From the IMG/VR virus record IMGVR_UViG_3300024503_000485, positions 1 to 64,000 of that record: 64,000 nucleotides of DNA, one strand, 5' to 3'. Numbering within the stretch: the stretch's first letter is position 1; each line of letters starts with the position of its first letter. Both the position numbers and the translations under genes were made by a program. Shown in pieces: positions 12,272 to 30,440 of this stretch. The notes beneath the pieces are model-generated. The model made no database searches and was not told where the DNA came from. It was given only the letters and a program-made list of their open reading frames with translations.

Positions 12272-12286
12272 AAAAATATTTAGTTC

Positions 12287-15012: not shown

Positions 15013-15128
15013 TACGAAACTACAAGCATTACTAGCAAGTATAGTCTTAGTCTTGGTCTACTGGCTGTTTTGGATCATAACACATTAAATACTTGTATAA
15101 CAACAAACAACTACGCAGGAGCGTGTAT

Positions 15129-15332
15129 ATGCGTAATCCAGAAGAAATTTCTAAATGGGTAAGAACAGAACTGGCTAGAGTAAATCCCTATACAGATAAA
15201 CTTAGAGCACATCTTTGGGCAGTGGGTTTTCTAAGTTCAATTATAGCTAGTCTAATATGGGCAGACTCTAAGAACTTGACGAGTTTTAGACTGGCTGTGG
15301 CTGCTAAACTCAAAGAACAAGATAGACTATGA
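15129..15332 (+). CDS. hypothetical protein
   Basis: GGAGCG RBS at 15118-15123. Confidence 0.6.
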   Translation: MRNPEEISKWVRTELARVNPYTDKLRAHLWAVGFLSSIIASLIWADSKNLTSFRLAVAAKLKEQDRL

Positions 15333-15340
15333 CCTATAAT

Positions 15341-15779
15341 GGCCCCGCTGTAGAATCAACGTGTACATATATGTAGTATAGGCCTAAAGGCCGAGGGAAC
15401 TATATATACATTCTTACTGAAGGATAAGAATCAAAGATTCTTACTGAGCTGTAGACGTTGATTTTACTGGGGTTTTGCAGCTGGGTCAGTAAGTAGCAAA
15501 AAGTGTGATTTACTGAGCCTAGACTCGCGTACAGGCCCCGCTGCGTAGGGTGTGCGCAAGGAAAAAGTGCAGAAAAGTGTGATAAAGTGTGAAATTGTGT
15601 GGTATTTGAACTATGCCTCATAACCAATTCACCACGGTAGAGTCTACACTAAAAGATTCTAGCCTAGACTCTGCTCAAACGATTCAGAATCCACCATTTC
15701 TCAGGGAGAATCCACCGTGAATCCACCGTGAACTAGTGCTCTTAAACCAGTCTACGGTAGGCGCAAAGTGGCCCCGCTG
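15341..15779. repeat. non-coding spacer with several short repeat families (iteron-like)
   Basis: GGCCCCGCTG x3; CTTACTGA x2 plus an inverted copy; four 10-bp phased AAAGTGTGA-like units 15563-15602; GCCTAGACTC x2; GAATCCACC x3. Confidence 0.8.
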
Positions 15780-15828
15780 CTGTAGATTGTGGTTGACATA
15801 CTCACGTAATGACTATATAATATCGCAT

Positions 15829-16083
15829 ATGACACAAAGAGAAGTATTTGAATATAACAATGAAGAAGAAGCCGAAATGGCTCAGATTCATAGTCTACAC
15901 ATTAATCAGAACGCTATAGATTCTGTACAAGCAGAGTTGGCTCGTCAAAGATCACAGCCTAGTCTAGAGGAATGTGAAGACTGCGGTGAAGCTATTCCAC
16001 AGGCTAGACAGCAAATGGTCCCAGGTTGTACACGCTGCGTATACTGCCAAGGCTTATTTGAGCGTCGTAGAGCTGGATACTAA
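15829..16083 (+). CDS. TraR/DksA C4-type zinc-finger protein
   Basis: CEDCGEAIPQARQQMVPGCTRCVYCQ; N-terminal acidic coiled coil; ATG 7 nt after -10. Confidence 0.85.
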   Translation: MTQREVFEYNNEEEAEMAQIHSLHINQNAIDSVQAELARQRSQPSLEECEDCGEAIPQARQQMVPGCTRCVYCQGLFERRRAGY

Positions 16084-16152
16084 TAGGCCCCGCTGCTATA
16101 CACACGTACATGTATGCAAAAGAAAAGACTATTATCTAAAAGCAGAGACTCT

Positions 16153-16452
16153 ATGACCCTACCTGATGAACGTTATCGCGCTGTAGAGCAAACACAGCGT
16201 TTTCTAGAATCACTATTAGATTCTGCACAAACTCCCAGAGTACCCAAAAAGATCCGAGATTCAGCAAGAAGTCTGCTGCGCCACTATCCCTCACGTTGGG
16301 ATCTAGATCGTGCAGCAGCAGCTAGTCCTGATGTTTTTATACGTAGACTTGATCCCTTGTACAAGATGGTCAAGACTCATGACATGCAGCAGCGTATGGC
16401 CGAGGATGTGGAAGAAGATCTACGTGAAGCTAAGAATAGAGGTGAACTATGA
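16153..16452 (+). CDS. hypothetical phage protein (MTLPDERYRAV family)
   Basis: TPRVPKKIR...LLRHYPS motif. Confidence 0.7.
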   Translation: MTLPDERYRAVEQTQRFLESLLDSAQTPRVPKKIRDSARSLLRHYPSRWDLDRAAAASPDVFIRRLDPLYKMVKTHDMQQRMAEDVEEDLREAKNRGEL

Positions 16453-16631
16453 CTAGGATAAAGATTGTTCAACCGGTGGAAGCGGACGGGGAAGTGGCTA
16501 TGACTCCAGAAGAACTAGCACTAGCACAGGCTCGTCAACGTGCTGCGCTGGTGCCTAAATACGGGGAACCTGGCTGGAATCCTGATGCTCGCGACCCCGA
16601 CACTGACACCTTACCCAATCAATAATTAATT

Positions 16632-16708
16632 CACGCATTAGCTCAGTTGGATAGAGCAACAGCCTTCTAAGCTGTGGGTCAGGGGTTCGAATCCCTTATG
16701 CGTGGCCA
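16632..16708 (+). tRNA. tRNA-Arg (anticodon UCU)
   Basis: Cloverleaf: acceptor CACGCAT/ATGCGTG, anticodon arm ACAGC-CTTCTAA-GCTGT, TTCGAAT T-loop, encoded CCA. Confidence 0.95.
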
Positions 16709-16712
16709 GTTA

Positions 16713-16790
<78 letters not shown>

Positions 16791-16796
16791 CTTGAG

Positions 16797-16832
16797 AAAC
16801 CCTATAGTCAACTCAGCTATAGGGTTTTTTCT
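16797..16832 (+). terminator. intrinsic terminator after tRNAs
   Basis: AAACCCTATAG/CTATAGGGTTT stem plus T-run. Confidence 0.85.
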
Positions 16833-17097
16833 TGTCCAAACGGCTGTGATCGTGTACAATATGCATTTAAACAAGGACAGCAATGACAGCACTACAGCAA
16901 AAGTTCTACGCTGCGTTAGCCTCGCTACAGCAGCACACAAATTTAGATGACGAAGAACAGCAAGACGCAATTGCTGCACTCGCGCAGCTAATCGAGGATC
17001 ACGTCAAATAACCCTAGGCCCTCTAGGGTCTTAGACAAAATTGGTTGACATTTTGGCGCAGAGATCGTACAATATACATATGTTGAAGGAGCGGCGA

Positions 17098-17418
17098 ATG
17101 CGAGCAAAGAGATCAGATCGTAATCACATCATCTATGAACTACGTGTTAACGGTGAGAACTACATTGGTGTCACAGCCAAGACTGAATCAACTATTAATA
17201 AGAGTGTTCGCGCTCGTGCTGCCAAGCACTTCTATCGTGCCAAAACAGAAACTAAGAATTGGCTGCTTTGCTCAGCTCTACGCAAGCTCAACAGCAAAGA
17301 AGAAATTGAAATCATTGTTCACGAGATTGTTCGTGGCAAAGCCCTGGCCCATAAGCGCGAAGTAGAAATCCGCAGACTGGTAGGCCCTACACTAAACACA
17401 GACACACGAGGAGACTAA
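17098..17418 (+). CDS. GIY-YIG-like protein
   Basis: HIIYEL...YIGVT; GGAGCG RBS. Confidence 0.55.
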   Translation: MRAKRSDRNHIIYELRVNGENYIGVTAKTESTINKSVRARAAKHFYRAKTETKNWLLCSALRKLNSKEEIEIIVHEIVRGKALAHKREVEIRRLVGPTLNTDTRGD

Positions 17419-17419
17419 C

Positions 17420-17674
17420 ATGGACTTGACCGTAGAAATGTATCGTATAGATCGTCGCTGCAAAGCGGGCCGAGTACTAGTAATGAAGCAGGACTACACA
17501 GACGTGAGCTGGGCCCAAATGGAGCGCATGTACCCACGTCGTCCACGCTACATCGTAGAGTTTCACGAGACTTGGGTTACAAAGACTAACCTTATGACGG
17601 GCTTGCCCTATCAGGAACGTTACGATACCCCACATTGCTGTTCAGCAGCCAGCGAGACCTACTGGAGCATGTAG
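17420..17674 (+). CDS. hypothetical protein
   Basis: GAGGAGA RBS. Confidence 0.65.
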   Translation: MDLTVEMYRIDRRCKAGRVLVMKQDYTDVSWAQMERMYPRRPRYIVEFHETWVTKTNLMTGLPYQERYDTPHCCSAASETYWSM

Positions 17675-17734
17675 GGGTTGACAACTAGGAATTTTGGCAG
17701 TATAATACAGGCTTACAACGTTAAGGAGCGACCT

Positions 17735-17911
17735 ATGACTAACCCAATCCCTTCTAGCAACATTTGGCACACACCCGCAGATCTCAACGAGCTGCAGGAT
17801 ATGATCAATCAGTTCACAGGCCAGGAAGCTGCGCTGGCTGCACACGTGATGATGTTGACCCTGAACACCTGCCACAAATTAGTCGATGAAGCTATCAAGG
17901 AGGCCGCATGA
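17735..17911 (+). CDS. small early protein
   Basis: Own promoter plus AAGGAGCGACCT RBS. Confidence 0.7.
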   Translation: MTNPIPSSNIWHTPADLNELQDMINQFTGQEAALAAHVMMLTLNTCHKLVDEAIKEAA

Positions 17912-18273
17912 GGTACTGGGACGAACTGCTGCGCGAGCAGCGTAATGGTCTAACCGTGATCGTGGACAAGACCTGGGAAGACTGCTCTATTCGCGATCTC
18001 TTTGATGAAAGCTGCTGTGATGTAGAGGACCTGGAACGTAAGGTTAACAGGGGCGATTTGGATTGGTTTATGCTCAGAGCTCGCGTCATGTACAATGATC
18101 TGGAACTGGGCTCAGAGATCTGTGGAGGGTTCCTCTACGAAGATGCTCGCGATGTGCTGCGTGATGGTATGGCTGACGAGATGATCTGGCAAGCAGAGGA
18201 AGAAGCCAAACGACAATTACCCGGCCTTATTGAAGGGTTATTGCGTGTAGAGGTTGACAAATTGGCTGCGTGA
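17908..18273 (+). CDS. hypothetical early protein
   Basis: GGAGG RBS, ATGA overlap. Confidence 0.65.
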   Translation: MRYWDELLREQRNGLTVIVDKTWEDCSIRDLFDESCCDVEDLERKVNRGDLDWFMLRARVMYNDLELGSEICGGFLYEDARDVLRDGMADEMIWQAEEEAKRQLPGLIEGLLRVEVDKLAA

Positions 18274-18309
18274 GCATACAATAGAGACTTAGCAACAAAG
18301 GAGCGCGAT

Positions 18310-18648
18310 ATGCAGACACTTTTTAGCACAGCAGGCGACGGCTTGTGGAGCAACGTAGCAAAGCCTGTACACATTGTAGACATGCAACTTGCCTACATTA
18401 ACGACGAGAGAGATTTTGGCGAGCTGCGTGTTTACTTTAACACTAAGTTTTGGGACGTTAACAAAGACGGTCTCATTTACACAGACAGCAACTTTATTGA
18501 AGAACTGCGCAATTTTTTAATTGCACAAGAACTAACTGACGACTGCGACTACAGCGAGCAAGGCATGCAGGGAGACAACTACGTTAGCTTAGACGTGGGA
18601 GAGGGCTTTATTGCTGCGTGGGATGCAAAGTTTAACTTGTTTGCATAA
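18310..18648 (+). CDS. hypothetical early protein
   Basis: Own promoter plus GGAGCG RBS. Confidence 0.7.
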   Translation: MQTLFSTAGDGLWSNVAKPVHIVDMQLAYINDERDFGELRVYFNTKFWDVNKDGLIYTDSNFIEELRNFLIAQELTDDCDYSEQGMQGDNYVSLDVGEGFIAAWDAKFNLFA

Positions 18649-18720
18649 GCACAAAACGGGGGTTGACAACAGCCCCCGTTTATAGTACAATAGACACACA
18701 TTAACACAAAGGAGCGTGAA

Positions 18721-19143
18721 ATGGCTACTCGAAGCACTATTGCAATGGAGCAACCCGACGGTCGCGTAATGCAGATCTACTGCCACTGGGACGGTTACCT
18801 TGATCACAACGGAGAGATCCTTCAGGAGCACTATCGTGATCGCGCTAAGGTTTTGGCACTCATGTATCTGGGCGATATCAGCTCCTTAGCTCCTAGCATC
18901 GGAGAACCGCACGATTGGGACAACTGCCCTGAGGGTGTCTGCAACGCCTACGGACGCGATCGTGGCGAATCGGGCTGTGAAGCTCGTGTGTTCAAGGACT
19001 TTGAGGACTACAAGGCCAACCACCAGTACGAAGAATACGAGTATATCTTCCGTTCGGACGATCAGTGGTATGTTTCCGAATACAGCCGAGCCTACCGCGC
19101 ACTTGAGCAGGTGCTGGCAGAAGCAGAAACCCTAGAGGATTAA
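18721..19143 (+). CDS. hypothetical early protein (MATRSTI...IYCHWDGY family)
   Basis: Own promoter plus GGAGCG RBS. Confidence 0.7.
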   Translation: MATRSTIAMEQPDGRVMQIYCHWDGYLDHNGEILQEHYRDRAKVLALMYLGDISSLAPSIGEPHDWDNCPEGVCNAYGRDRGESGCEARVFKDFEDYKANHQYEEYEYIFRSDDQWYVSEYSRAYRALEQVLAEAETLED

Positions 19144-19224
19144 GGGTTATTACTGAATGGGGTTGACAACAGCCTCATTTGGTAATATAATAGAGGTATG
19201 TTCAACAAATGCATAGGAGCGAAA

Positions 19225-20298
19225 ATGCCAGCAGTAATTGAGATTCGTGAGGGTTCGTATAAGATCCGTGGCTCAGATGTGAGCATGGCCGGTAACCGTT
19301 TCGAACTAGTAGAGCAATACAAAGAAGGTGCTCAGGGTGGTTATGTAACCGTAGAAGGTGGCTCTGTACAGCCTGCTAACCCTGGCATTCCAGATCGTAA
19401 GATCCGTATTCGTTGCAGTTCAGCACAAAGTTACATGATTGTCGCCGGTGAAGTGCCAGCAATGCCCGCAGGTGATAAAAGTTTGGAGCAGATTAAAATT
19501 TCAGATAATGCCGTAGCACACGAAACGGACGAGCAGATCATCGAACGTCTTCGTAACCGTTTTGACGTGCTCAAAGATATGACCAAAGCAGTCAAAGAAG
19601 GTACCGTGCGAGCTATGATCGTCACAGGCCCTCCAGGCGTGGGCAAGAGCTTTGGTGTAGAAGAAGTACTAAGCAAGGACGATCTCTTTGATATGATGGG
19701 TCAGCGCAAGCCCAAATATGAGATTGTCAAAGGCGCAATGTCAGCAGTGGGTCTGTACAGCAAGCTCTATCACTACAGCGAAAAAGGCAATGTTATCGTG
19801 TTTGATGACTGCGACTCTGTGCTGTTGGATGACCTTAGCCTTAATATTTTGAAGGCTGCTCTGGACTCTAGCAAGAAGCGTACTATCTCTTGGAACACTG
19901 ACAGCCGTGTTCTGCGTTCAGAAGGAGTGCCAGATCGCTTTGAATTTAAAGCAGGCGCTATCTTTATCACTAACATCAAGTTTGAGAATGTGCGTTCTAA
20001 GAAACTGCAGGATCACCTTGCCGCTCTTGAAAGCCGTTGCCACTACATTGATCTTCAAATGGACACAGATCGCGAAAAGGTCTTGCGCATTAAGCAGATC
20101 ACCCAAGATGGCATGTTGGACAGCTACGAGTTTGAAGACTGCGTTAAGGATGAGATCATTGATTACATTCTTGAAAAACGAGCACAAATGCGTGAGCTGA
20201 GCCTGCGTACGGTACTCAAGGTAGCAGACCTGCGCAAGAGCTTTCCTACAAATTGGAAGAGCATGGCAGAAGTTACCGTTATGAAGCGAGGTGCCTAA
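19225..20298 (+). CDS. AAA+ ATPase
   Basis: Walker A GPPGVGKS, Walker B IVFDDCD, ALESR arginine finger; start at ATG 19225 after GGAGCG. Confidence 0.85.
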   Translation: MPAVIEIREGSYKIRGSDVSMAGNRFELVEQYKEGAQGGYVTVEGGSVQPANPGIPDRKIRIRCSSAQSYMIVAGEVPAMPAGDKSLEQIKISDNAVAHETDEQIIERLRNRFDVLKDMTKAVKEGTVRAMIVTGPPGVGKSFGVEEVLSKDDLFDMMGQRKPKYEIVKGAMSAVGLYSKLYHYSEKGNVIVFDDCDSVLLDDLSLNILKAALDSSKKRTISWNTDSRVLRSEGVPDRFEFKAGAIFITNIKFENVRSKKLQDHLAALESRCHYIDLQMDTDREKVLRIKQITQDGMLDSYEFEDCVKDEIIDYILEKRAQMRELSLRTVLKVADLRKSFPTNWKSMAEVTVMKRGA

Positions 20299-20540
20299 TG
20301 GAAGGCCCGTCTAAGACCTGTACTTGGATTGGGCCCGAGCAGGACCCTTTGAAGCACTGGCCCATTCATTACTGCGGGTGTCCTAGTGTTCAAGGGTCTA
20401 GCTACTGCGCTGATCACTACTGGAAGGTCTATGCTCGAGGCACTTCAGTTAACGGCCGTCGACGTGAACGTGCCATAGAGCAAGAGATTCAACAACTTAA
20501 ACAAGCACAAGAGCTTGAGGAGTATGAAAATGAAAACTAA
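20298..20540 (+). CDS. GcrA C-terminal-like Cys-rich protein
   Basis: TCTWIG...HYCG...GSSYCADH resembles the GcrA pattern CxWPIG...FCG...GxxYCxxH. Confidence 0.55.
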   Translation: MEGPSKTCTWIGPEQDPLKHWPIHYCGCPSVQGSSYCADHYWKVYARGTSVNGRRRERAIEQEIQQLKQAQELEEYENEN

Positions 20541-20810
20541 CATCTTTACAATTGCCCTGCTGGCGCTTGTAATCGTATTCTTTTTTGCCGTAGGTCCTAT
20601 CCTGGTAATTTGGAGTATGAATACACTATTCCCCGTGTTGGCCATTCCGTATACGTTTTGGACATGGTTAAGCGTGGTCTTGCTCGGCGCATTCTTTCGA
20701 GCAAATGTTTCCATTAAACGGAAAGATTGAGGTTGCTATTTTACAACAAGAATGCTACTATATTGACACGCTGTGGAACACAGCCATATAACATAAAGGA
20801 AAACACAGAC

Positions 20811-21086
20811 ATGAAACGTATCTCTAAAGACTCAAAGACTTTTAAGATTTTTACTGCACTACAAAATGGTGACAAACTAACTGCAAGCCAAGCTGAGAAG
20901 CGTTTTGGCGTAAAGAACCTGGCTGCTGAAGCAAGCCGTCTCCGCCAAGCTGGTTATGCTGTTTATGCTAACTCTCGCAAGGCAGGTAATGGTGTTACCG
21001 TTACTGAGTATGAACTAGGCCGTCCTTCACGCGAGATCGTTGCTCTAGGCTACTTAGCTCGTAACATGGGCATGACATTGGCTTAA
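20811..21086 (+). CDS. winged helix-turn-helix DNA-binding protein
   Basis: LQNGDKLTASQAEKRFGVKNLAAEASRLRQAGYAVY...YELG; AAGGA RBS. Confidence 0.75.
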   Translation: MKRISKDSKTFKIFTALQNGDKLTASQAEKRFGVKNLAAEASRLRQAGYAVYANSRKAGNGVTVTEYELGRPSREIVALGYLARNMGMTLA

Positions 21087-21162
21087 TAGGTCGCTCCACA
21101 AAACCAAGCCGATTCGCTCCCGGGGCGGTTTTGGAATAGGGTCCTAAGGGCCCTATTTTTTT
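21086..21162 (+). ncRNA. candidate 3'UTR anti-RBS sRNA A
   Basis: Seed ATAGGTCGCTCC; hairpin CAAAACC/GGTTTTG enclosing CCG-ATTCGCTCC-CGG; terminator AATAGGGTCC-TAA-GGGCCCTATT plus T-run. Confidence 0.55.
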
Positions 21163-21257
21163 GGCCGTTTGTTGCAAAAAAGCCACAGGCCGGCACTCTC
21201 CAAAATGGTTGACAGAACTGCTGTTTGATGGTATAATAGAGTTATTGTTAAGGAGCG

Positions 21258-21905
21258 ATGATGAGCACATTTACAGCAGATCAAGTTTGGGGCCTAGCTG
21301 TTAGGGCTGATACACAGAATGGCGGCTACTGCAAAGAGCCTGTATTCGCTGCTACCGCTACACACGGGATCGATTACAATAACGTGATCAAACAAGCCAA
21401 CAAGGTTCTGGTCAAGAACTGGCTCAGAGAGAATGCTCAGCCTACAGCAGAAGAGATCACTCTTGGCCAAGAGTATCGTAACTATTTCAAAACATTCACC
21501 CTCAAAGCACTCACTGGCAAGATCAATGACTTTGAGACCACAGCTATGAAGATTGCAGCCAAAGACGAGTTCACTGGCCGTGATATGTTGGACTTTGCTG
21601 TTGTCAGCTGTTTACCCAGCGTAGCTCGTCGTGATAAGGCCCAAACAGAGCTCAAGCGAGAGATCTATCAAAGCGAGCAACTCTCCGGCGCTGTAGGTGA
21701 TGAGATCGTAGGGGAGATCGAAGTGATCCGCACACGATTCAACCCTGAATACAACAAGTATCGCATCACTGCTCGTATGGGTGAGAGCTTTATTGATTTT
21801 TGGTACAAGGATGATGTCAAAGGCACTATCCGTATCAAGGGCAAGATCAAGAATGTTCGTGGCGATAAAACAACACAGCTCAACTATGTTAAAAAAGTTG
21901 GTTGA
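21258..21905 (+). CDS. hypothetical early protein (possible C-terminal OB fold)
   Basis: Own promoter plus GGAGCG RBS; ends KGKIK...TQLNYVK. Confidence 0.7.
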   Translation: MMSTFTADQVWGLAVRADTQNGGYCKEPVFAATATHGIDYNNVIKQANKVLVKNWLRENAQPTAEEITLGQEYRNYFKTFTLKALTGKINDFETTAMKIAAKDEFTGRDMLDFAVVSCLPSVARRDKAQTELKREIYQSEQLSGAVGDEIVGEIEVIRTRFNPEYNKYRITARMGESFIDFWYKDDVKGTIRIKGKIKNVRGDKTTQLNYVKKVG

Positions 21906-21982
21906 CAACTGCACCAAGAGGTGCTACAATAATGATACTGGGAAAGTAATTGTTTTAACTCTTTTTATTAGCGAGGTCTAGA

Positions 21983-23068
21983 ATGGCAAAAGCACAAGAC
22001 GTTTCCGTCCGTCAAGTTGGCCCTAAGGGTGCCAAAAAAGCAATCCGTCACGCAATTAAAATGCGTCGTCCTGTATTCCTGTGGGGCCCTCCAGGTATTG
22101 GTAAGTCCGATCTCGTGAAGCAGATCGGTGATGATTCCAACCGTGAGGTTATTGATGTGCGCCTAGCACTTTGGGAACCCACCGACATCAAAGGTATTCC
22201 GTATTACAACGCAGACCAGGGCAAGATGGTTTGGGCTCCTCCCGCAGAACTGCCCATTGACCCAGAGTCCACTGCTATCATCTTCTTGGATGAATTGAAC
22301 TCTGCTCCTCCTGCTGTTCAGGCCGCGGCCTATCAGTTGGTGCTGAACCGTCGTGTTGGTACCTATGTTCTGCCTAAGGGTGTTGACGTAGTCGCCGCTG
22401 GTAACCGTGAAGGTGACCGTGGTGTTACCTATCGTATGCCTGCTCCGTTGGCTAACCGCTTCCTGCACTTGGAAATGAAGGTGGACTTTGATGACTGGCA
22501 AGATTGGGCTACCCTTAACAAGGTGCATCCTGAGGTTGTAGGTTATGTGGGTTTTGCCAAGCAAGACTTGTATGACTTCGATCCTAAGAGCCCTAGCAAG
22601 TCATTTGCTACTCCTCGTTCTTGGAGTTTCGTCAGCGACCTGTTAGGTGATGACGGTGTTGACGAAGATACTTTGTCTACATTGGTAAGTGGTGCTATTG
22701 GTGACGGCTTGGCTGTTAAGTTTATGGCTCACCGTAAGATTGCTGGCAAATTGCCTAAGGCAGAAGACATCCTTATTGGCAAGGTCAAGGACCTTCAGAT
22801 CAAGGAAGTGTCAGCGATGTATTCTTTGACCGTTTCATTGTGCTACGAGTTGAAAGACCGTGCAGAGAAAAAGGTTAAAGATTGGGATGCTCAGGCAGAC
22901 AACTTCTTCCGCTACATGATGGACAATTTCCCAACTGAGATTGTGGTCATGGGTGCTAAGACTGCTCTTACCAACTACGACTTGCCGTTGGACGCTACAA
23001 AGATGAAGAGCTTTGACGAGTTCCACAAGCGTTTTGGTAAGTATGTTTTGAAAGCGATGGAGAATTAA
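21983..23068 (+). CDS. MoxR-like AAA+ ATPase
   Basis: GPPGIGKS, IIFLDE, AAGNR, PLANRF, TPRSW. Confidence 0.9.
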   Translation: MAKAQDVSVRQVGPKGAKKAIRHAIKMRRPVFLWGPPGIGKSDLVKQIGDDSNREVIDVRLALWEPTDIKGIPYYNADQGKMVWAPPAELPIDPESTAIIFLDELNSAPPAVQAAAYQLVLNRRVGTYVLPKGVDVVAAGNREGDRGVTYRMPAPLANRFLHLEMKVDFDDWQDWATLNKVHPEVVGYVGFAKQDLYDFDPKSPSKSFATPRSWSFVSDLLGDDGVDEDTLSTLVSGAIGDGLAVKFMAHRKIAGKLPKAEDILIGKVKDLQIKEVSAMYSLTVSLCYELKDRAEKKVKDWDAQADNFFRYMMDNFPTEIVVMGAKTALTNYDLPLDATKMKSFDEFHKRFGKYVLKAMEN

Positions 23069-23225
23069 GACCTCGCCCATCGCCGGGCGGGGGCTCACCC
23101 AGGGCTTCCGCCCACCTTTTGGAGTGCCGGGCGGTGTTGTAAATACGCAACATCGTCCGGTTTCTTTTTGGTTGACAAACCCGGATCCTGGTGCTATAAT
23201 ATACACATACTAAGGAGAGCGACTA

Positions 23226-24434
23226 ATGTCTACAAACATCGTTGATAAATTAACTACTGCACGGGTCGGTCTATTGCTCAAAGCACCGTTCTTTGGCAAC
23301 ATGGCAACTCGTATGCGTTTAGTCTGTGCTGACGACTGGTGCCCTACTGCGGCGACCAATGGCCGTGACTTTTATTACAACACAAAGTTCATCGAAAAAC
23401 TTTCAGAGAAAAAACTAGAGTTCCTGTTTGGTCACGAGATCCTTCACTGCGTGTTTGATCACTTTGGCCGTGTAGGTAGCCGTGATCGTCAACTTTCTAA
23501 CATCGCACAGGACTTTGCTGTAAACCAAATCCTTGTAGACGAGCGTATTGGTGAGAAGATCACTGAGGTTAAGATCTGTTATGATCCTAAGTTCCGTGGA
23601 CTTGCTTGGGAAGAAATCTACGATATTCTGTATGAAAAAGCAGAGAAGATTCCTATGGATCAACTGATGAAAGAGTTGGGCGATCTGTTGGACGAGCACA
23701 TTAAGGAACAAGAGGGTGCTGGCTCAGAAGATGACAAGACCAAAGACGGTAAGAGCAAGCCTAGCCTTAGCAAAGAAGAAGCAGAACGCATCAAGCAAGA
23801 GATCAAAGAAGCAATGATCCAAAGTGCCGCGGCCGCTGGTGCAGGCAAGACTCCTGCAGGCATTATGCGTATGATTAAGTCTATGACTGAGCCTAAGATG
23901 GACTGGCGTCAGTTGGTGCAACAAGAGATCCAAAGCATTGTTCGCAACGACTACTCCTTCCAGCGTGTTAATCGCAAGAGTATGCACTCAGGCGCAATCT
24001 TGCCAGGCATGAAAGAAGCAACTACCATTGACGTGGCTATTGCTGTTGACATGAGTGGTAGTATTGGTGAAGAAGATGCCAGCACATTCCTTTCGGAGAT
24101 CAAAGGCATCATGGACCAATACGAGGACTTCAAGATCAACCTGTGGTGCTTTGACACAGAGATCTATAACCCACAAGAGATCACTCATGACAACTCACAT
24201 GACTTGCTTGAGTATGAACCTCAAGGTGGCGGTGGCACAGACTTTGATGTCAACTTTACCTACATGGAAGAGAATGACATTCGCCCTAAGAAGTTCATTA
24301 TGTTCACAGACGGCTATCCCTGTGGTAGTTGGGGTCCTGAGGACTACTGCGACACAATCTTTATCGTTAAGGGCAATACACAAGCAGAGGCGCCCTTTGG
24401 TCAAACGGTGATCTACGAAAAAGAGGCGGGCTAG
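23226..24434 (+). CDS. putative metallopeptidase plus VWA domain protein (DUF2201-like)
   Basis: TAATNG, HEILH (HExxH), DMSGS MIDAS, GGGGTDF, MFTDG. Confidence 0.9.
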   Translation: MSTNIVDKLTTARVGLLLKAPFFGNMATRMRLVCADDWCPTAATNGRDFYYNTKFIEKLSEKKLEFLFGHEILHCVFDHFGRVGSRDRQLSNIAQDFAVNQILVDERIGEKITEVKICYDPKFRGLAWEEIYDILYEKAEKIPMDQLMKELGDLLDEHIKEQEGAGSEDDKTKDGKSKPSLSKEEAERIKQEIKEAMIQSAAAAGAGKTPAGIMRMIKSMTEPKMDWRQLVQQEIQSIVRNDYSFQRVNRKSMHSGAILPGMKEATTIDVAIAVDMSGSIGEEDASTFLSEIKGIMDQYEDFKINLWCFDTEIYNPQEITHDNSHDLLEYEPQGGGGTDFDVNFTYMEENDIRPKKFIMFTDGYPCGSWGPEDYCDTIFIVKGNTQAEAPFGQTVIYEKEAG

Positions 24435-25550
24435 GAGAGTGCCGGGGGGTGTGGCTAAAAAGCCACACTTCCACCAAAGGCCCCGCTGCTACACGTATGC
24501 ACGTATATAGATTATGGTTGACAGATAGATAATTTGGCCTTATAATACATATACACAGACACAGAAAGGGGCGGTAAATGGAACTAGTAATTGCATTTGT
24601 CCTTGGGCTCATAGTAATGGACTTAATGTGGGCCTGGCGCTTGGGCATCCCTCAGATGCTTTGGGCACGTTGGAAGTATCGCAAAGTCCTTAAACAAATG
24701 TCAGAACAGGAGCAATCATGAAAGTATTCATCGCAGGTACAATCTTTGGTCTCGTAGTGGCTACCGTAGGATTATCGGGCATCGCTAAGATCTTCGATAA
24801 TGGGGTTGCCAAAGTCCAGGAAGTATCTAAAGAAGCTGCGAAGTAATGCCTAGATACACGTTCTGGCGCAATTCTATAATCTGCGAAGTCTACGAACTTG
24901 AAGCAGGTTCAGAAGAGGAAGCACGTGAAAAGCTCATGAATGGAGAAGTGGACCCAATGACCGAAGAATGGGTTGATTGGGCCACTGACAACTTCGAGCT
25001 GGAAGACGTGGAAGATGAATTGGTAACATTCTTAAAATCAAAGGAAACAACATGACTTTTGGTATGATCGTTGAAGATCCCTTTTATGATGAAGATGGTG
25101 TACTCATTGACGAGGATGCTGATTGGGAAGATGTTGCAGACCCGGGCGACCTAGTCTACAACGAAGACATCGGCGAATGGTTGGACAAAGAGCTAGCTGC
25201 TCACGATCGCACCTACAGCCCATTCGATACAATCAACAGCTAACGTACATCATTTTGGTTGACAACTTGGCTTTTTGGTGTTAAACTATAGGCATAGTGA
25301 AAGGAGCCAGCTGTGAATCAAAATGAATTTGAATACCTGAAGCGAGCCGTTGATGCATTGGGATCGTCAGAGACAACTCCGATGGCCCGTGTCAAGATCT
25401 TAAGGACGATGGAGCAGATCGCCGGACGCTGTGCCGTGGTGATCGAGAGGGAGTTCCAAGACCGCGTAGATCAGAACTTGGCCAATGCACATTTGGTTGA
25501 CCTTTTGAGAAAATGATTGTATAATTTTAACACTAACTTAAGGAGCGAAT

Positions 25551-26177
25551 ATGCCTAATTGGTGCAACAACAACTTGACGCTGGAGCATGATGATCCAGC
25601 AATGATTACCCGTGCTAAAGAAGCACTTGATCGTGGAGAGTTCCTGCAGGAGTTTATTCCTGTGCCCAAAGAACTCACAGAGACCATGGCAGGATCCTAC
25701 GGGGATGATGCCAAACAAAAGGATCTGGAAGCACAGATGAAAGCCAATGTGGCCAAATATGGCTACAGCAACTGGTATGACTTCTGCGTGGGTGAATGGG
25801 GAACCAAATGGGATGTAGGCGGTGATGGACAAAGCGACATCCACCCAGACGGTAAGAGTCTATTCACTTCTTTTGATTCAGCATGGTCACCACCCGTGAA
25901 TGCTTATCAGAAGTTGGAACAACTTGGCTTCCGTGTGAACGCAATGTTCTACGAATCCGGTATGGCATTTGCTGGTATTTACGAAGATGGCAACTGCGAG
26001 GACTTTAGCCTAGAAGGCATGAGTGCCGATGAGATCGAGCAGAACTATCCAGAGTTGGACGAAGCATTCTGCATCGCCGAGGCTATCCGTGAATTCCAGG
26101 AAGAGGACGAAGAGCTCACAGAGTGGATCAAGGATGGTGTTGAGCAGAACAAGAAACTAGGACTTGTTTCAGAATGA
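25551..26177 (+). CDS. DUF1281/YubB ferredoxin-like protein
   Basis: MPNWCNN start, WYDFCVGEWGTKWD, FDSAWSPP, YESGMAFAG. Confidence 0.8.
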   Translation: MPNWCNNNLTLEHDDPAMITRAKEALDRGEFLQEFIPVPKELTETMAGSYGDDAKQKDLEAQMKANVAKYGYSNWYDFCVGEWGTKWDVGGDGQSDIHPDGKSLFTSFDSAWSPPVNAYQKLEQLGFRVNAMFYESGMAFAGIYEDGNCEDFSLEGMSADEIEQNYPELDEAFCIAEAIREFQEEDEELTEWIKDGVEQNKKLGLVSE

Positions 26178-26473
26178 TGCACATTGTTAAACTCGACAAG
26201 AGATACGATGGTTATGGAAGATTTAGCCATCGTGTCGAGTTTATCAGTTATGGCGCAGGTGCGAGGCTTACAGATCAAAAGAATTGGATTAAGTCTCGCA
26301 ACTACTTGTGGACGCAATTCGGTCCGAGTGCCGAATTGCACCTAGCTCGCCCAGAGTTATTCGATGGGGTCCAACCAAAATGGGCCTGGGATGATTCTAA
26401 GAGTGCTATATATTTGAAAGACGAATCTTACACAATGTTCGTTTTGAAATGGGAGTCATGGCAAAATGCCTAG
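26174..26473 (+). CDS. hypothetical protein
   Basis: Coupled ORF. Confidence 0.6.
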   Translation: MMHIVKLDKRYDGYGRFSHRVEFISYGAGARLTDQKNWIKSRNYLWTQFGPSAELHLARPELFDGVQPKWAWDDSKSAIYLKDESYTMFVLKWESWQNA

Positions 26474-26741
26474 AGAGTTTAACTTCAGTTTTCACGTGGT
26501 CTGCGCCGGGGACGGCAAGGCAGACGTGGGCCGAGTCGAAGAAATGATCGATTTGGCCATGCAGGATCTGGTCTACGACGACGAGTTCATCGCCGCCTTG
26601 GACGAGAAGGACAGCGTTACTATTCAAGTAATTCCGCAATTTGGACAAACAAATGGTTGACAAACTTGAATAGTGATGCTACATTATTAACATGCCCAAT
26701 AGGCATATCTTTAACACACACACTTTTTGGAGAACTTTAAA

Positions 26742-27044
26742 ATGGCTACAGATAAGAAATTTGCGGTTGCTGGTGTTTCGACACTGGAAGGTAAGACCAA
26801 GCTTCGTTTCGCTAACGATGTTATGCGCATCAAGATCTTGGCAAAGAACGGTCACAAGGATGTTGAGCTCGTTGAGCTGCCATCAGAGATGACCAAGGCT
26901 GAGGCTGTACAACACCTCAAGAGCGTTGGTTTCGGCTCAGGCAATGCTGCTGTACAAGCTGCGATCGCCTACGCTGAGAAGAAGAATCCAGCCCCTAAAG
27001 CTGTTAAGACTACTGCCGCGAAGGCAGAGGCTGTTACCGCTTAA
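26742..27044 (+). CDS. small basic phage protein with Ala/Lys-rich tail
   Basis: FAVAGVS...KLRFAND.MRIKILAKNGH; own promoter. Confidence 0.75.
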   Translation: MATDKKFAVAGVSTLEGKTKLRFANDVMRIKILAKNGHKDVELVELPSEMTKAEAVQHLKSVGFGSGNAAVQAAIAYAEKKNPAPKAVKTTAAKAEAVTA

Positions 27045-27113
27045 ATCCGATTCGCTCCCGGTAGCGGTAACCTTGGGCCCTAGTATGCACACGTATACTA
27101 GGGCGTTTTTTTT
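27033..27113 (+). ncRNA. candidate 3'UTR anti-RBS sRNA B
   Basis: GTTACCGCT/AGCGGTAAC stem enclosing CCG-ATTCGCTCC-CGG; terminator GCCCTAGTAT/ATACTAGGGC plus T8. Confidence 0.55.
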
Positions 27114-27189
27114 GACTTCGGTTGACAACTGGATTAACTGATCATATAATAGTATTAACGAATTGGAGCACAGGAGCTTAAATACACAC

Positions 27190-27516
27190 ATGAGCAAATT
27201 AGAATACCTTGCAAGACCTCTGGTAGCATTCGATGCTTATAACAAAGATCATAGGCGCTACTACGCAGAGTTCCTAGAATACGGTGGATGGGGGCGATGT
27301 CCAGTTCGCTTTATTTGTCCCAGTGATTCCGGTTCAGATCTAACACTAATGATCAAGAACCACCTAACTGAATACTACATTGATCGCGAGTTTGGGGGCG
27401 GCAAACTGCAACAGCTCAAAAGCGAAGAACTCAGCGAAACCGCAGACGAAATGTATCGAAGAGCAGGGAAACTTCGTAAGGAAGCAGCCGCCCTGTTGAA
27501 TCCCAGGAGAACCTAA
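27190..27516 (+). CDS. hypothetical phage protein
   Basis: RPLVAFDAYNKDHR...WGRCPVRF. Confidence 0.7.
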   Translation: MSKLEYLARPLVAFDAYNKDHRRYYAEFLEYGGWGRCPVRFICPSDSGSDLTLMIKNHLTEYYIDREFGGGKLQQLKSEELSETADEMYRRAGKLRKEAAALLNPRRT

Positions 27517-27902
27517 TGAGCGACCTTGATGTAACCATGATCATCCTTTACGGCCTTGGCCTACTTTCAGGCTGGTGGGCATCTAAGATCTTTCATCTGC
27601 ACCTACTACGCAGCATCCTGAAGGATCTTGGGGTGAGTCAGCAGGATCTACTCGCACTCCTTAACCGATCAGAAGAAGAATCATCCGATGATCCCGAGCT
27701 GGATCAGATCGATATCAAAGTTGAGAAGCATAGTAACACACTCTATGCGTTTCGTAAAGACAACGATCAGTTCCTAGGGCAGGGCAACAGCAAGGAGCAG
27801 CTGATCGAAGCCATGGCGCAGCGTATGAAGAATGTAAGGTTGATCGTGGTTGAGGGCCGTGAATACATGGAGTCCAAAACGGTTGACACGACCGCGGTTT
27901 GA
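27516..27902 (+). CDS. membrane-anchored hypothetical protein
   Basis: N-terminal TM helix, AGGAG RBS. Confidence 0.65.
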   Translation: MSDLDVTMIILYGLGLLSGWWASKIFHLHLLRSILKDLGVSQQDLLALLNRSEEESSDDPELDQIDIKVEKHSNTLYAFRKDNDQFLGQGNSKEQLIEAMAQRMKNVRLIVVEGREYMESKTVDTTAV

Positions 27903-27917
27903 GCTTACAATTGAGTT

Positions 27918-28469
27918 ATGAAAATTACAGAACTCCAGAACCTATACCGCGCAGGCCAGATCATCCGCAAGGCAGATCACGCAGACAAGTTGGACATCCA
28001 ATTGGATCCCACAATGACTCGCGAGCTGTTTCGACAAGAAGTTGGCCGTGTTTACTTCATCGTAGTCAACGGTGAAATCAAGAAGATTGGCGGCTCACAG
28101 GCCAAGGGCGGACTCAAGGGAACCTTAGGGGCCTACTTCACTGGTTTTGCCAAGGGCATGAGCGCCAGGACCTATTGCGTATGGAACTTCATGCGCCAGC
28201 AGATCGATCAAGGGCACACGGTTGAGATCTATGTTACATTTGCTCCCCTGGTTGAAGCAACCATTCCAGGTCCCCTGGGACATGTAACCGTACACATTCC
28301 TGTAGACTATCATACCATTGAGAAGAGCTACGTGGATCACTTCGTGCTGGTCGAGAGCAAGCATCCTTACTTGAACATGCAGGAAAGTGCGGGCCGTTGG
28401 GAAGATACGGGGCTTTTAGAAGGCTATCACGGGCTTTGGGTTCCACAACAAGAAACCCTAGCAGCCTAA
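27918..28469 (+). CDS. GIY-YIG family nuclease (restriction-enzyme/EndoII-like)
   Basis: GRVYFIVVNGEIKKIGGS...VEIYV...IEKSYV...PYLNMQE. Confidence 0.5.
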   Translation: MKITELQNLYRAGQIIRKADHADKLDIQLDPTMTRELFRQEVGRVYFIVVNGEIKKIGGSQAKGGLKGTLGAYFTGFAKGMSARTYCVWNFMRQQIDQGHTVEIYVTFAPLVEATIPGPLGHVTVHIPVDYHTIEKSYVDHFVLVESKHPYLNMQESAGRWEDTGLLEGYHGLWVPQQETLAA

Positions 28470-28548
28470 GGGTTATTCAAAAAAGTGGTTGACAACAGCC
28501 TCTAGATCGCATATAATACAAGCTCAACAAACAACTTAGGAGCGAAAC

Positions 28549-28902
28549 ATGGAAGCACAAGCACGTGAGTATTTTGTCCGTCGTCTTAACGAAGTAGCAC
28601 AAGAAAAAGTGCAGGCCAAAGCAGTAGAACTTTACGGCGCAAGTGGCCGTCCAGAACAGCCTACTTGGGGCATGGTGTTTGAGGGCATTAAATCCGGCGA
28701 GATTACCCTTAAAGCAGACAAGGTGGACTATACGGGTCCTTACCTCAACCCTACGGACGTGGAGTGGCCTGCTATGGAAGCCAAAAAGGCAGAGCTGGAA
28801 GCATATCGCAAGTTGGTAGCCGCTGAGAAGCAACGGGCTATGGACGCTGTCTATTTGGACGAGAGCGCACAAGAAGCCCTTAAGGCTTTTGAAGCAATTT
28901 AA
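28549..28902 (+). CDS. hypothetical early protein
   Basis: Own promoter plus GGAGCGAA RBS, followed by terminator 28911-28936. Confidence 0.7.
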   Translation: MEAQAREYFVRRLNEVAQEKVQAKAVELYGASGRPEQPTWGMVFEGIKSGEITLKADKVDYTGPYLNPTDVEWPAMEAKKAELEAYRKLVAAEKQRAMDAVYLDESAQEALKAFEAI

Positions 28903-30440
28903 ACAACAAAAGCCCTACACTCCGTAGGGCTTTTTCTTGACCTTTTGGCACTTTGGACATATAATACACTTACACAGAAGGAGAAGTGTATGAGAGTAGA
29001 AGTCAAAAGCCTATACAGAGTTCAATGCACAGAGTATGAAAGAGGCTATGGTCAAAGGGACATGGGTGTGGTGTTCTTTGACACAGAAGAAGAAGCCAAG
29101 CAGTTCTGCCTAGAATACGCCTCGGGTGATAGCGAATGCTACTTCCGAGCAAGCTACGAAAAGATCAACTAATTCTAGAAAGCCTAAAATGAAAAGCAAA
29201 GACACACAGATCTACAAGAACATTGGCTCTATCCAGGCAGTACAGGGTGACGAAGGCCGCTACTACTTCTACACTCACTTTGCTACAGGTAACACCTGCG
29301 ACGAAGACACTATCAAAGGTGCCAAAGAGATGTTGGATTGGGAAGAAAAGAACCATCAAGAAGTACAGGCTGCGATCCGTGTGCTTCAGGGTCGAGGTTA
29401 CAGAGTATTCAAAGAGGTTTGTTAATGGGATGGGTAGTCTACGATGCTCGTACGGGGCACATGCAAAAGTATTACAAGCTGGCCCGTACAGCCAAGAGTA
29501 TCGTCACGCAGCACAACACAGAACGAATCTATGAGGACTGGATCTATCGTCCTCAGAGCACTTGGGCCTGCTGCTCCTATGCAGACTACGAAGGGATCTT
29601 AATGGGTCTGCGTGGGGAAGCGTTTAAGATGTGGCAGTTTGTTAAGAATAACCCGCAGAGCTAAAGGGTCTTTCTTTTTGGTTGACCTTTGGGCCTTTTG
29701 GTGCTATACTATAGGTATAGTAAGGAGCGTGAAATGATAACAGAAAAACAACGTGTTGTAAATGCCCTAAAGGGTTGGCAGTTCATCCGTGGAACCCATG
29801 GTTGCTTGTATGATCGTGGCTCAGCAGATTCCTACTACGGCCGTCCACGTCAACCTCACTACGGTGGAGTGGGAGGCGATTCCGGCCGCCGAGTCTCGGT
29901 CAACGATGCTGCATCCGTGGCCGAATACTTGGCAGGCTACGACTACAACGAGCGTTATGGAGACAAAAAGAACTATGATTAATCATGGCCTACAATGGCT
30001 GGGCACAGCCGCTCTGATCTCTATGTATATTGTGATGAGCTTCTTTCCTGAGCGATATCCGCTGAATATCCTCTTAGGATTACTGGGAGGTCTATGCTAT
30101 TTTGCGTGGTCGTATCGTGTGGCAAATAAGCCACAGATGATCGTTAACTTCGCAGGAATAGCCGTGTGTGCCGCAGGGTTATTTCGTTATTTTGATTGAC
30201 ACTCAGGCACTTTGGCTATACAATTAACACATACGCTAAACAACTAGGAGCAGAAAATGGTTACACAAGCACAGGCAATGTTTGTATTTGTAGTAGGACT
30301 ACTAATCACAATGTTGGGCACAGGTGGTGTAGAAGCCAGCATCTCTAACCTAGAACTTCTACAAGGTCTAGCAGTGGCCATCACTGGCCTAGGCTGTATG
30401 GGCTGTGGTGTGCTCATGCTTAGGCAAGCCGAGGACTAAT

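Follow-up and report, generated by a model that had tools for sequence, protein, structure and literature searches.

Conserved hairpins complementary to an extended ribosome-site tag in the early mRNAs of uncultivated lake phages

A candidate anti-Shine-Dalgarno element in early transcripts

Two small RNA hairpins predicted at the ends of early phage messages carry a loop that is the exact antisense of an extended ribosome-binding "tag" shared by about ten early genes. Both the hairpin and the tag are conserved across a large family of uncultivated lake phages, and we therefore consider them a candidate for a so far undescribed RNA switch of phage early translation. The window we analysed is a 64,000-nucleotide stretch of DNA (positions 1 to 64,000 of IMG/VR record IMGVR_UViG_3300024503_000485), and the features discussed below are the following:

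21092..21097 (+), an extra single-stranded CGCTCC just after the stop codon and 5' of hairpin 1, which may be a third anti-tag element; it is present only in a sub-clade and was also seen in the related loci L081 and L152.
21099..21133 (+), hairpin 1, with outer stem CAAAACC/GGTTTTG (21099-21105 / 21127-21133), internal loops, a 3-bp inner stem CCG/CGG, and the 9-nt loop ATTCGCTCC (21112-21120).
21134..21162 (+), predicted intrinsic terminator after hairpin 1 (11-bp stem, T7 tail).
27033..27071 (+), hairpin 2, with outer stem GTTACCGCT/AGCGGTAAC (27033-41 / 27063-71), whose 5' half is the last codons of the 100-aa gene; the TAA (27042-27044) lies in the internal loop, and the inner stem and loop (27050-27058) are identical to those of hairpin 1.
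27077..27113 (+), predicted intrinsic terminator after hairpin 2 (12-bp stem, T8 tail).
20811..21086 (+), winged-helix (HTH_39) gene that hosts hairpin 1 in its 3'UTR, with an untagged ribosome site (AAGGAAAA).
26742..27044 (+), very conserved 100-aa gene of unknown fold that hosts hairpin 2, with its own promoter at 26657-26685 and an untagged ribosome site (GGAGAA).
19216..19224 (+), tagged ribosome site GGAGCGAAA of the AAA ATPase (19225-20298), fed by promoter 19163-19191; first cistron of the operon inferred to end at hairpin 1.
25542..25550 (+), tagged ribosome site GGAGCGAAT, a 9/9 match to the loop, of gene 25551-26177, fed by promoter 25497-25525; first cistron of the unit inferred to end at hairpin 2.
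15118..29729 (+), span that holds the ten tagged GGAGCG ribosome sites (15118, 17088, 17725, 18300, 18711, 19216, 21252, 25542, 28539, and 29724).

The original prediction described two copies of a 15-mer, each forming a hairpin between a stop codon and a terminator, and this observation was correct at every coordinate and is not due to chance. The 15-mer CCGATTCGCTCCCGG is found at 21109-21123 and 27047-27061 on the + strand, and these are the only two hits in the window at up to 2 mismatches, against 0.02 expected from shuffled sequences. Copy 1 lies 22 nt after the TAA at 21084-21086, and both copies lie at a stop codon and directly before a strong intrinsic terminator, as would be expected of a 3'UTR-derived small RNA. 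The predicted folds were also as described, although the support from folding energy differs between the two copies, with the region of copy 2 having z = -3.6 to -4.35 and copy 1 being weaker at z = -1.36. The claimed matches to ribosome sites also held, as the site at 25542 matches the reverse complement of the loop at 9/9 positions and those at 19216 and 28539, both reading GGAGCGAAA, match at 8/9. GGAGCG occurs 13 times on the + strand, 11 of them in 15.1-29.7 kb, and 10 of those are ribosome sites. Nine of the ten lie 12-25 nt after a near-consensus sigma-70 -10 box, while the site at 15118 follows only a TAAATA-type box. The two host genes (starts 20811 and 26742) and the MoxR gene (start 21983) do lack GGAGCG, and the gene that follows hairpin 1 (start 21261) is itself tagged.

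Conservation of the hairpin and the tag in related phages

To examine whether the element is under selection, we compared it with loci from related IMG/VR phage contigs. In more than 100 distinct contexts the 9-nt loop and its closing G-C pair did not change, while the next two stem pairs, the outer stems, and the terminators vary and covary. Among loci that were retrieved through the MoxR gene rather than through the motif, 41 of 80 carry the motif unchanged while the flanks diverge. Of 42 loci found through the winged-helix gene, 40 carry G-ATTCGCTCC within 120 nt of the stop codon of that gene, and the one variant (locus L033) keeps UCGCUCC. Hairpin 2 is present after every homolog of the 100-aa gene at 68% identity or more, except that of locus L121 (72%). 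The same loop sits on CCG/CGG, TCG/CGA, CTG/CAG, GTG/CAC, TTG/CAA, CCTAGG, and CCTTGG stems, among others. In 15 chosen hairpins, 97.8% of cells pair, compared to 68% in shuffles (0 of 500 shuffles reach the observed value), with 14 double-sided changes. This test relies on the inner stem, as a swapped-flank control for pairing of the outer stem was too lax because many instances share the stem CAAAG/CTTTG. The hairpins occur in 1-3 copies, always on the transcribed strand and before or inside a terminator, and in many relatives the 15-mer forms the apex of the terminator hairpin itself. The host gene changes between lineages, which argues for a function that is independent of the host gene.

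The ribosome-site tag is conserved independently. About half of all GGAG-type ribosome sites in these phages read A-GGAGCGAA, where GGAGCGAA is the exact complement of loop positions 2-9. GGAGCG makes up 43% of GGAG-type ribosome sites in hairpin-bearing relatives and 49% in a more distant hairpin-bearing lineage, where the next bases are A (82%) and A (66%). In contrast, it makes up 10% in a sister clade without hairpins near MoxR, 0 of 15 in PA5oct, the nearest cultured relative, and 15%, with no AA extension, in GC-rich contigs that were hit by chance. Relatives that lack the hairpin largely lack the tag. Tag status is also conserved gene by gene, with 24 of 25 homologs tagged for the ATPase, 8 of 9 for gene g28549, and 6 of 6 for gene g18310, compared to 0 of 40 for the winged-helix gene, 0 of 19 for the 100-aa gene, and 0 of 39 for MoxR. 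The MoxR partner gene (DUF2201) lacks GGAGCG but carries the near-tag GGAGAGCGA. In related contigs, the exact reverse complement of the whole 15-mer serves as a leader and ribosome site directly before ATG. Out of 121 crude gene starts, duplexes of -10 kcal/mol or better between the loop and the start region occur only at genes of the early cluster, and the tagged sites are predicted to be mostly unpaired. By energy alone, however, the loop is not exceptional, as 8 of 400 of its own permutations and 136 of 1024 NNNNNCUCC loops reach as many targets; such threshold tests discriminate poorly because GC-rich loops score well on any Shine-Dalgarno (SD) sequence. Co-folding of whole hairpins with leaders in RNAcofold was uninformative, as it cannot place intermolecular pairs inside a closed loop.

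A possible role in early translation

The original prediction held that the hairpins are 3'UTR-derived small RNAs of 70-80 nt that silence an early regulon in trans, as an RNA analog of RegB, and this interpretation is only partly supported by our results. The comparative evidence supports a strongly selected RNA structure with a loop complementary to a conserved 8-nt tag, the co-occurrence of hairpin and tag by clade, and the conserved exemption of the host genes and MoxR, but release of a discrete small RNA, action in trans, and silencing were not shown by it. We believe that the two hairpins are best explained as anti-SD RNA elements built into the 3' ends of early transcripts, although we hold this reading to be only about as likely as not. 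In this view, each hairpin presents, on a short G-C-closed stem, a 9-nt loop whose positions 2-9 (UUCGCUCC) would pair with the tag that marks the promoter-proximal cistron of most early transcription units. Pairing would cover the GGAG that the 30S subunit needs, so the most likely effect is a block of initiation on tagged early mRNAs, while untagged genes with GAGG- or AAGG-type sites, including the two host genes and the MoxR gene, would escape. The loop also contains UUCG, a YUNR U-turn motif typical of fast-pairing antisense loops. The structure, the invariance of the loop, the complementarity, the clade-wise co-occurrence, and the tagged or untagged status of each gene rest on our analysis directly, whereas pairing in vivo, repression, and the dominant topology are inferred from sequence alone, without RNA or reporter data.

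The pairing could occur within one molecule or between molecules. Seven of the ten tagged sites in the window lie on transcripts that probably end at one of the two hairpins, and most tagged sites sit at the 5' end of nested, co-terminal transcripts, making intramolecular 5'-3' pairing an equally good topology. The inferred transcripts from the promoters at 19163 and 25497 begin with the best-matching tags and reach hairpin 1 and hairpin 2, respectively, with no strong terminator in between. Pairing in trans would rely on stable 3' fragments protected by the terminator, and because only 2-3 anti-tag loops face at least 10 tagged sites in the window, these fragments would need to accumulate. 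A conserved promoter about 400 nt upstream of hairpin 2 would give a short mRNA rather than a small RNA. Some observations fit this model less well. A 9-nt loop on a 3-bp stem can form only about 6-7 bp without opening, and no lineage was found in which loop and tag have changed together, so the complementarity rests on one fixed pair of sequences. Loop position 1 (A) and the closing G-C pair also never vary even though their would-be partners in the tag do, hinting at an extra constraint from loop geometry or a protein.

Several alternatives could account for parts of these results, though we consider each of them less likely. The hairpin may be a recognition site for a protein, such as a phage or host RNA-binding protein, a nuclease, or a termination/antitermination factor, with the complementarity to the tag being secondary or coincidental. 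This reading, which we regard as unlikely, would explain the invariance of loop position 1 and the closing pair, the consistent location at or in a terminator, and the tandem arrays of 2-3 identical loops, which resemble protein-titrating RNAs of the CsrB/RsmZ type. However, it leaves the conserved CGAA extension of about half the ribosome sites unexplained, along with its exact 8-nt complementarity and clade-wise co-occurrence. Moreover, no RNA-binding domain was found among about 30 early proteins scanned against Pfam, 10 of which were also scanned against PHROGs, and the 100-aa protein encoded next to hairpin 2 has no recognisable fold. The hairpin also lacks the features of a lambda-type nut site, in which a short boxB hairpin with a 5-nt loop lies near the promoter and is preceded by boxA; here the loop is 9 nt, no boxA-like partner is conserved, and the element lies at the 3' end of the transcript, directly before or inside a terminator. 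Still less likely is that the hairpin is merely an accessory of the terminator or a 3'-end stability cap that matches the ribosome site by chance. Its position at the apex of many terminator hairpins would be consistent with this, but structural caps do not need an invariant 9-nt loop over more than 100 contexts, and we estimate that a random conserved 9-nt loop would contain the complement of a given 8-nt consensus with a probability of about 3e-5; the co-occurrence of hairpin and tag by clade also speaks against it.

It is also possible, though unlikely, that loop and tag do pair but with a protective or activating outcome, such as closing the 5' and 3' ends of the mRNA to shield tagged leaders from a nuclease, or insulating read-through transcripts. 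The evidence for pairing is the same in this case, a tagged site often lies 100-150 nt downstream of hairpin 1, across the terminator and the next promoter, and pairing between the 5' and 3' UTRs is known to control mRNA stability in B. subtilis hbs (PMC5737220). Because the duplex would cover the GGAG core itself, and by our nearest-neighbour estimate is about twice as stable as the AAGGAG:anti-SD duplex (about -12.7 against -6.6 kcal/mol), blocking of the 30S subunit is the simplest outcome. Lastly, we find it very unlikely that the shared sequence acts on double-stranded DNA, as an operator for a factor such as the neighboring winged-helix protein or as a recombination or mobile cassette. 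The motif does occur in both orientations relative to genes, in promoter-terminator cassettes that look modular, and next to a winged-helix gene in the case of hairpin 1. However, the flanking stems covary without keeping their sequence, which a DNA site does not need, the orientation relative to the T-run is constant in the 3' contexts, and in the other orientation the motif sits exactly at SD distance from ATG. The element also moves between host genes and is not tied to the winged-helix gene in the more distant lineage.

A more far-reaching possibility, which we consider somewhat less likely than not, is that a large family of uncultivated freshwater phages, distant relatives of the jumbo phage PA5oct, runs a "tag/anti-tag" translational code. 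In this scenario GGAGCGAA marks a regulon of early genes, and one invariant loop at the 3' ends of untagged early mRNAs reads the tag and shuts the regulon off, either as a per-transcript timer in cis or as an accumulating 3' fragment in trans, which would be an all-RNA counterpart of T4 RegB/RegA. Collective shut-off of phage early genes after transcription is known mainly through these proteins, and an RNA that does this by reading a shared, extended ribosome-site tag would be a new way for a virus to time translation. It would also provide a compact, portable pair, an 8-nt tag and a 15-nt hairpin, for orthogonal control of sets of genes. As the element is conserved in hundreds of lake-metagenome contigs and absent from Rfam, it is also a candidate new RNA family, and it would show that ribosome-site "dialects" within one genome can carry regulatory information.

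Comparison with known systems

Antisense regulators that target SD sequences are already known. In S. aureus, RNAIII and RsaE-type regulators display an unpaired C-rich seed in a hairpin loop, sometimes in several copies, that is complementary to the SD of a set of mRNAs. The element described here likewise has a conserved C-rich loop complementary to the SD of multiple mRNAs, with initiation block as the predicted effect, but it is phage-encoded, sits at the 3' end of mRNAs or inside terminators, and faces targets that share an 8-nt extended tag rather than a generic G-rich SD; no separate small-RNA gene is evident, and there is no sequence or Rfam relationship. In the icaR mRNA of S. aureus, an anti-SD motif in the 3'UTR pairs with the SD of the same transcript (PMC3868564), and the inferred transcripts from 19163 and 25497 likewise start with a complementary SD and end with an anti-SD hairpin. 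icaR is a single-gene case, however, whereas here one loop sequence matches about ten sites per 15 kb and is conserved across a phage family. The c4 antisense RNA of phages P1/P7 is a phage-encoded structured RNA whose loops pair with a ribosome-binding region further along the same transcription unit, but it controls one target (icd/ant) in lysogenic immunity. The 3'UTR-derived small RNAs of enterobacteria (CpxQ, SroC, and DapZ type) share the terminator of the mRNA and have a seed just upstream of a terminator with a long U tail, which resembles the arrangement of the hairpins. In T4, a subset of early ribosome sites carries an extended tag that marks mRNAs for collective inactivation by RegB/S1, while other genes use a different SD type (PMC1702504, PMC3014915). 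The comparison holds only as an analogy, as RegB is a protein nuclease whose site is GGAGRAYARAA with C counter-selected at position 5 (PMC1702504), whereas the tag has C at that position, and no RegB-like Pfam hit was found in a non-exhaustive scan of about 30 early proteins.

Database searches

A search of the window against Rfam 15 covariance models returned only two tRNAs above the gathering threshold, and permissive searches of both hairpin regions gave only sub-threshold matches driven by the terminators, including the c4-2 model, which scored 12.7 bits against a gathering score of 41 on the terminator only. Literature searches found no description of the tag or the hairpin. Megablast of the region against cultured phages found nothing, and the nearest isolates are PA5oct-like, at 47-51% protein identity, and lack both hairpin and tag. 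Terminators in the sister clade showed no analogous hairpin, so that clade offers no test of covariation between loop and tag. The 100-aa protein has no PDB sequence hit, and its AF2 model (pLDDT 80) has no significant Foldseek match; the occasional JGI label "ribosome maturation protein Sdo1" is unsupported. Lastly, a scan of 185,579 bacterial and archaeal genomes (596 Gb) for a host-encoded copy showed that the element is essentially absent from them and gave no clue to the host. There were 10 hits, of which nine look like chance and the tenth (L204) is a phage-like contig that was binned into a MAG.

Proposed anti-Shine-Dalgarno hairpins and their genomic setting

The 15-mer CCGATTCGCTCCCGG was found exactly at the two predicted positions, and a search allowing up to two mismatches on either strand returned no other matches, against 0.02 expected. 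The observation behind the original prediction was confirmed, and the elements that it concerns are as follows.

21109-21123: copy 1 of the 15-mer, starting 22 nt after the TAA of a winged-helix gene and followed by a strong intrinsic terminator.
27047-27061: copy 2 of the 15-mer, starting 2 nt after the TAA of a 100-aa gene whose last codons form the 5' half of the outer stem, also followed by a strong intrinsic terminator.
21092-21097: a third CGCTCC, which had not been predicted.

The predicted folds agree with the original description, in that each has a 3-bp inner stem, a 9-nt loop, internal loops, and outer stems that are unrelated in sequence. The ten GGAGCG ribosome sites, the 9/9 and 8/9 matches of ribosome sites to the loop, and the untagged status of the two host genes and of MoxR had also been stated correctly.

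The window is phage DNA with a G+C content of 40%. Its early region (about 15-31 kb) is packed with perfect or near-perfect TTGACA-17-TATAAT promoters, and many of these (nine in the window) are followed 12-25 nt later by AAGGAGCG and an ATG. Several early promoters (at 18657-18678, and also those at 18254, 19163, 28489, and 30196) have their -35 box inside a G/C-clamped palindrome, for example CGGGGGTTGACAACAGCCCCCG, and the same sequence also scores as a minus-strand terminator. These promoters are preceded by a conserved AGGGTTAT box, and the arrangement, which resembles the promoter-early-stem-loop cassettes of T4-type phages, is conserved in relatives. The window also holds tRNA-Arg(TCT) and tRNA-Met genes (16632-16790), an ORF for a DksA/TraR-type zinc finger (15736-16083), and a MoxR AAA ATPase paired with a DUF2201 metallopeptidase-like/VWA protein (21983-24434). 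The nearest cultured relatives are PA5oct-like jumbo Pseudomonas phages, at only 47-51% protein identity, while close relatives are abundant in IMG/VR. One sample code is shared with a MAG that appears to come from a lake time series, and we infer from this that the family lives in freshwater.

Conservation of the hairpin

To examine conservation without selecting for the motif, we fetched 80 loci through MoxR, of which 41 carry the 15-mer, with outer stems, internal loops, and terminators that differ between them. Of 42 loci with a homolog of the winged-helix gene, 40 have G-ATTCGCTCC within 120 nt of its stop, and one of the two exceptions (locus L033) has the loop TAGTCGCTCC, which keeps UCGCUCC. 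An exact-match scan of IMG/VR added at least about 107 new distinct contexts. In a more distant lineage, whose ATPase is 64% identical to that of the window, two or three copies follow the ATPase gene, and the last copy forms the apex of the terminator hairpin itself. In this lineage (contigs L084, L098, L099, L108, L117, L131, L145, L170, and others), the terminators that contain the 15-mer are followed by repeated GGGGTCGGGG-like boxes and A/T-rich stretches, which may be a different promoter or regulatory motif.

The same loop occurs on at least eight different closing stems, and the innermost G-C pair never changes. In 15 hairpins that were hand-picked for diversity, the next two pairs show 14 double-sided changes, with 97.8% of cells paired against 68% in shuffles (0 of 500 reach it). 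The element matches no Rfam family, and it is essentially absent from one genome each of 185,579 bacterial and archaeal species, where the one convincing hit is a phage-like contig inside a MAG.

A conserved ribosome-site tag complementary to the loop

In hairpin-bearing relatives, 43% of GGAG-type ribosome sites before ORFs of at least 50 codons read GGAGCG. In the more distant hairpin-bearing lineage the figure is 49%, followed by A (82%) and A (66%). The consensus is therefore A-GGAGCGAA, while the leader upstream varies, and this consensus is the exact complement of loop positions 2-9. The extension CGAA cannot pair with the canonical 16S 3' end, whose natural extension would be GGAGGUGAUC. 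The 8-mer GGAGCGAA may also occur in the helix-24 segment of the 16S rRNA of many bacteria (...GGGGAGCGAACAGG...), which would probably be a coincidence. Where the hairpin is missing, the tag is rare: 10% in the sister clade around MoxR, 0 of 15 in 40 kb of PA5oct, and 15% without the AA extension in unrelated GC-rich contigs that matched the 15-mer by chance.

Tag status is a conserved property of each gene, as shown by the counts below, and the untagged genes use GAGG- or AAGG-type sites.

Table. Homologs with a tagged ribosome site, by gene (numbers in names and parentheses are start coordinates in the window)
Gene: homologs tagged
ATPase (19225): 24/25
g28549: 8/9
g25551: 8/11
g18310: 6/6
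Winged-helix host gene (20811): 0/40
100-aa host gene (26742): 0/19
MoxR (21983): 0/39

The ribosome site of the DUF2201/VWA gene, the partner of MoxR, reads GGAGAGCGA (23214-23225). This is a near-tag that gives a 6-7 nt match to the loop (GAGCGA in the window, GAGCGAA in some relatives), and it is conserved in relatives. Within the window, loop-to-leader duplexes of -10 kcal/mol or better occur only at early-cluster genes, although energy-based tests are not discriminating. The tagged leaders are short and predicted to be largely unpaired.

In contigs related to the hairpin-less sister clade (L102, L104, L105, L125, L126, and L180), the exact reverse complement of the whole 15-mer (CCGGGAGCGAATCGG) serves as a leader and ribosome site 0-2 nt before ATG, except in L126 and at one L180 site, where a second SD-like sequence and 13-14 nt separate it from the ATG. 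It lies 8-14 nt after a TAAATA(C/T)T box, and the SD would then sit in the loop of a mini-hairpin perfectly complementary to the 3' hairpin. TAAATA(C/T)T boxes also lie a few nucleotides before start codons in the window, on the minus strand near 12283, 13487, 14351, and 37330 and on the plus strand at 15085, and they look like T4-late-type promoters with very short leaders.

Proposed mechanism

Two independently conserved elements that are complementary over 8 nt, one at Shine-Dalgarno position and the other in an exposed loop, are best explained by RNA-RNA pairing, and they also co-occur by clade. By our nearest-neighbor estimate, the duplex GGAGCGAA/UUCGCUCC is worth about -12.7 kcal/mol, against about -6.6 for AAGGAG with the anti-SD, and a block of 30S binding is therefore the simplest outcome. 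The loop contains UUCG, a YUNR motif, and such a U-turn would present CGCUCC for fast nucleation, as in classical antisense RNAs. The original prediction, that these are 3'UTR-derived small RNAs that silence an early regulon through a shared ribosome site, is only partly supported by our analysis. The evidence supports the structure, the complementarity, and the regulon logic, whereas processing, action in trans, and silencing are not shown and remain inferences made from sequence alone.

The pairing may take place within one molecule or between molecules. Promoters between 15.8 and 21.1 kb have no strong terminator before 21134, and those between 23.2 and 27.0 kb have none before 27077, and seven of the ten tagged sites therefore probably sit at the 5' ends of nested transcripts that end in a hairpin. 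This would allow icaR-like pairing within one molecule, which would act as a per-transcript limiter, because translation of the first cistron would proceed only until the 3' end is made. The trans model needs the hairpin-terminator fragment to accumulate, which is plausible because the fragment is structured and has a T7-T8 tail, but the stoichiometry is unfavorable for simple titration. Two observations fit an element whose function does not depend on its host gene, namely that the untagged host genes have their own conserved promoter and that the hairpin moves between host genes in different lineages.

No lineage shows a co-varying loop and tag. It is also possible that a protein takes part, as loop position 1 and the closing pair are invariant without a pairing reason. 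However, no RNA-binding protein or RegB homolog was recognized among about 30 early proteins. The conserved 100-aa protein encoded next to hairpin 2 (26742-27044) has more than 1000 homolog clusters in metagenomes, the 120 best of which are 78-95% identical to it. It has a confident AF2 model (pLDDT 80), but no recognizable fold, with no Pfam, PHROG, PDB-sequence, or Foldseek match, and its C-terminal tail is rich in Lys and Ala.

Comparison with known systems

Anti-SD regulators of this general type have been described before, and on present evidence the element would work like the C-rich-loop regulators RNAIII and RsaE, like the icaR 3'UTR anti-SD (PMC3868564), and like phage c4 RNA, although it is a member of none of them. 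It parallels T4 RegB/S1 in using an extended ribosome-site tag to mark early mRNAs. The tag differs, however, in that it has C at position 5, which RegB avoids (PMC1702504), and the reader of the tag would be an RNA rather than a protein.
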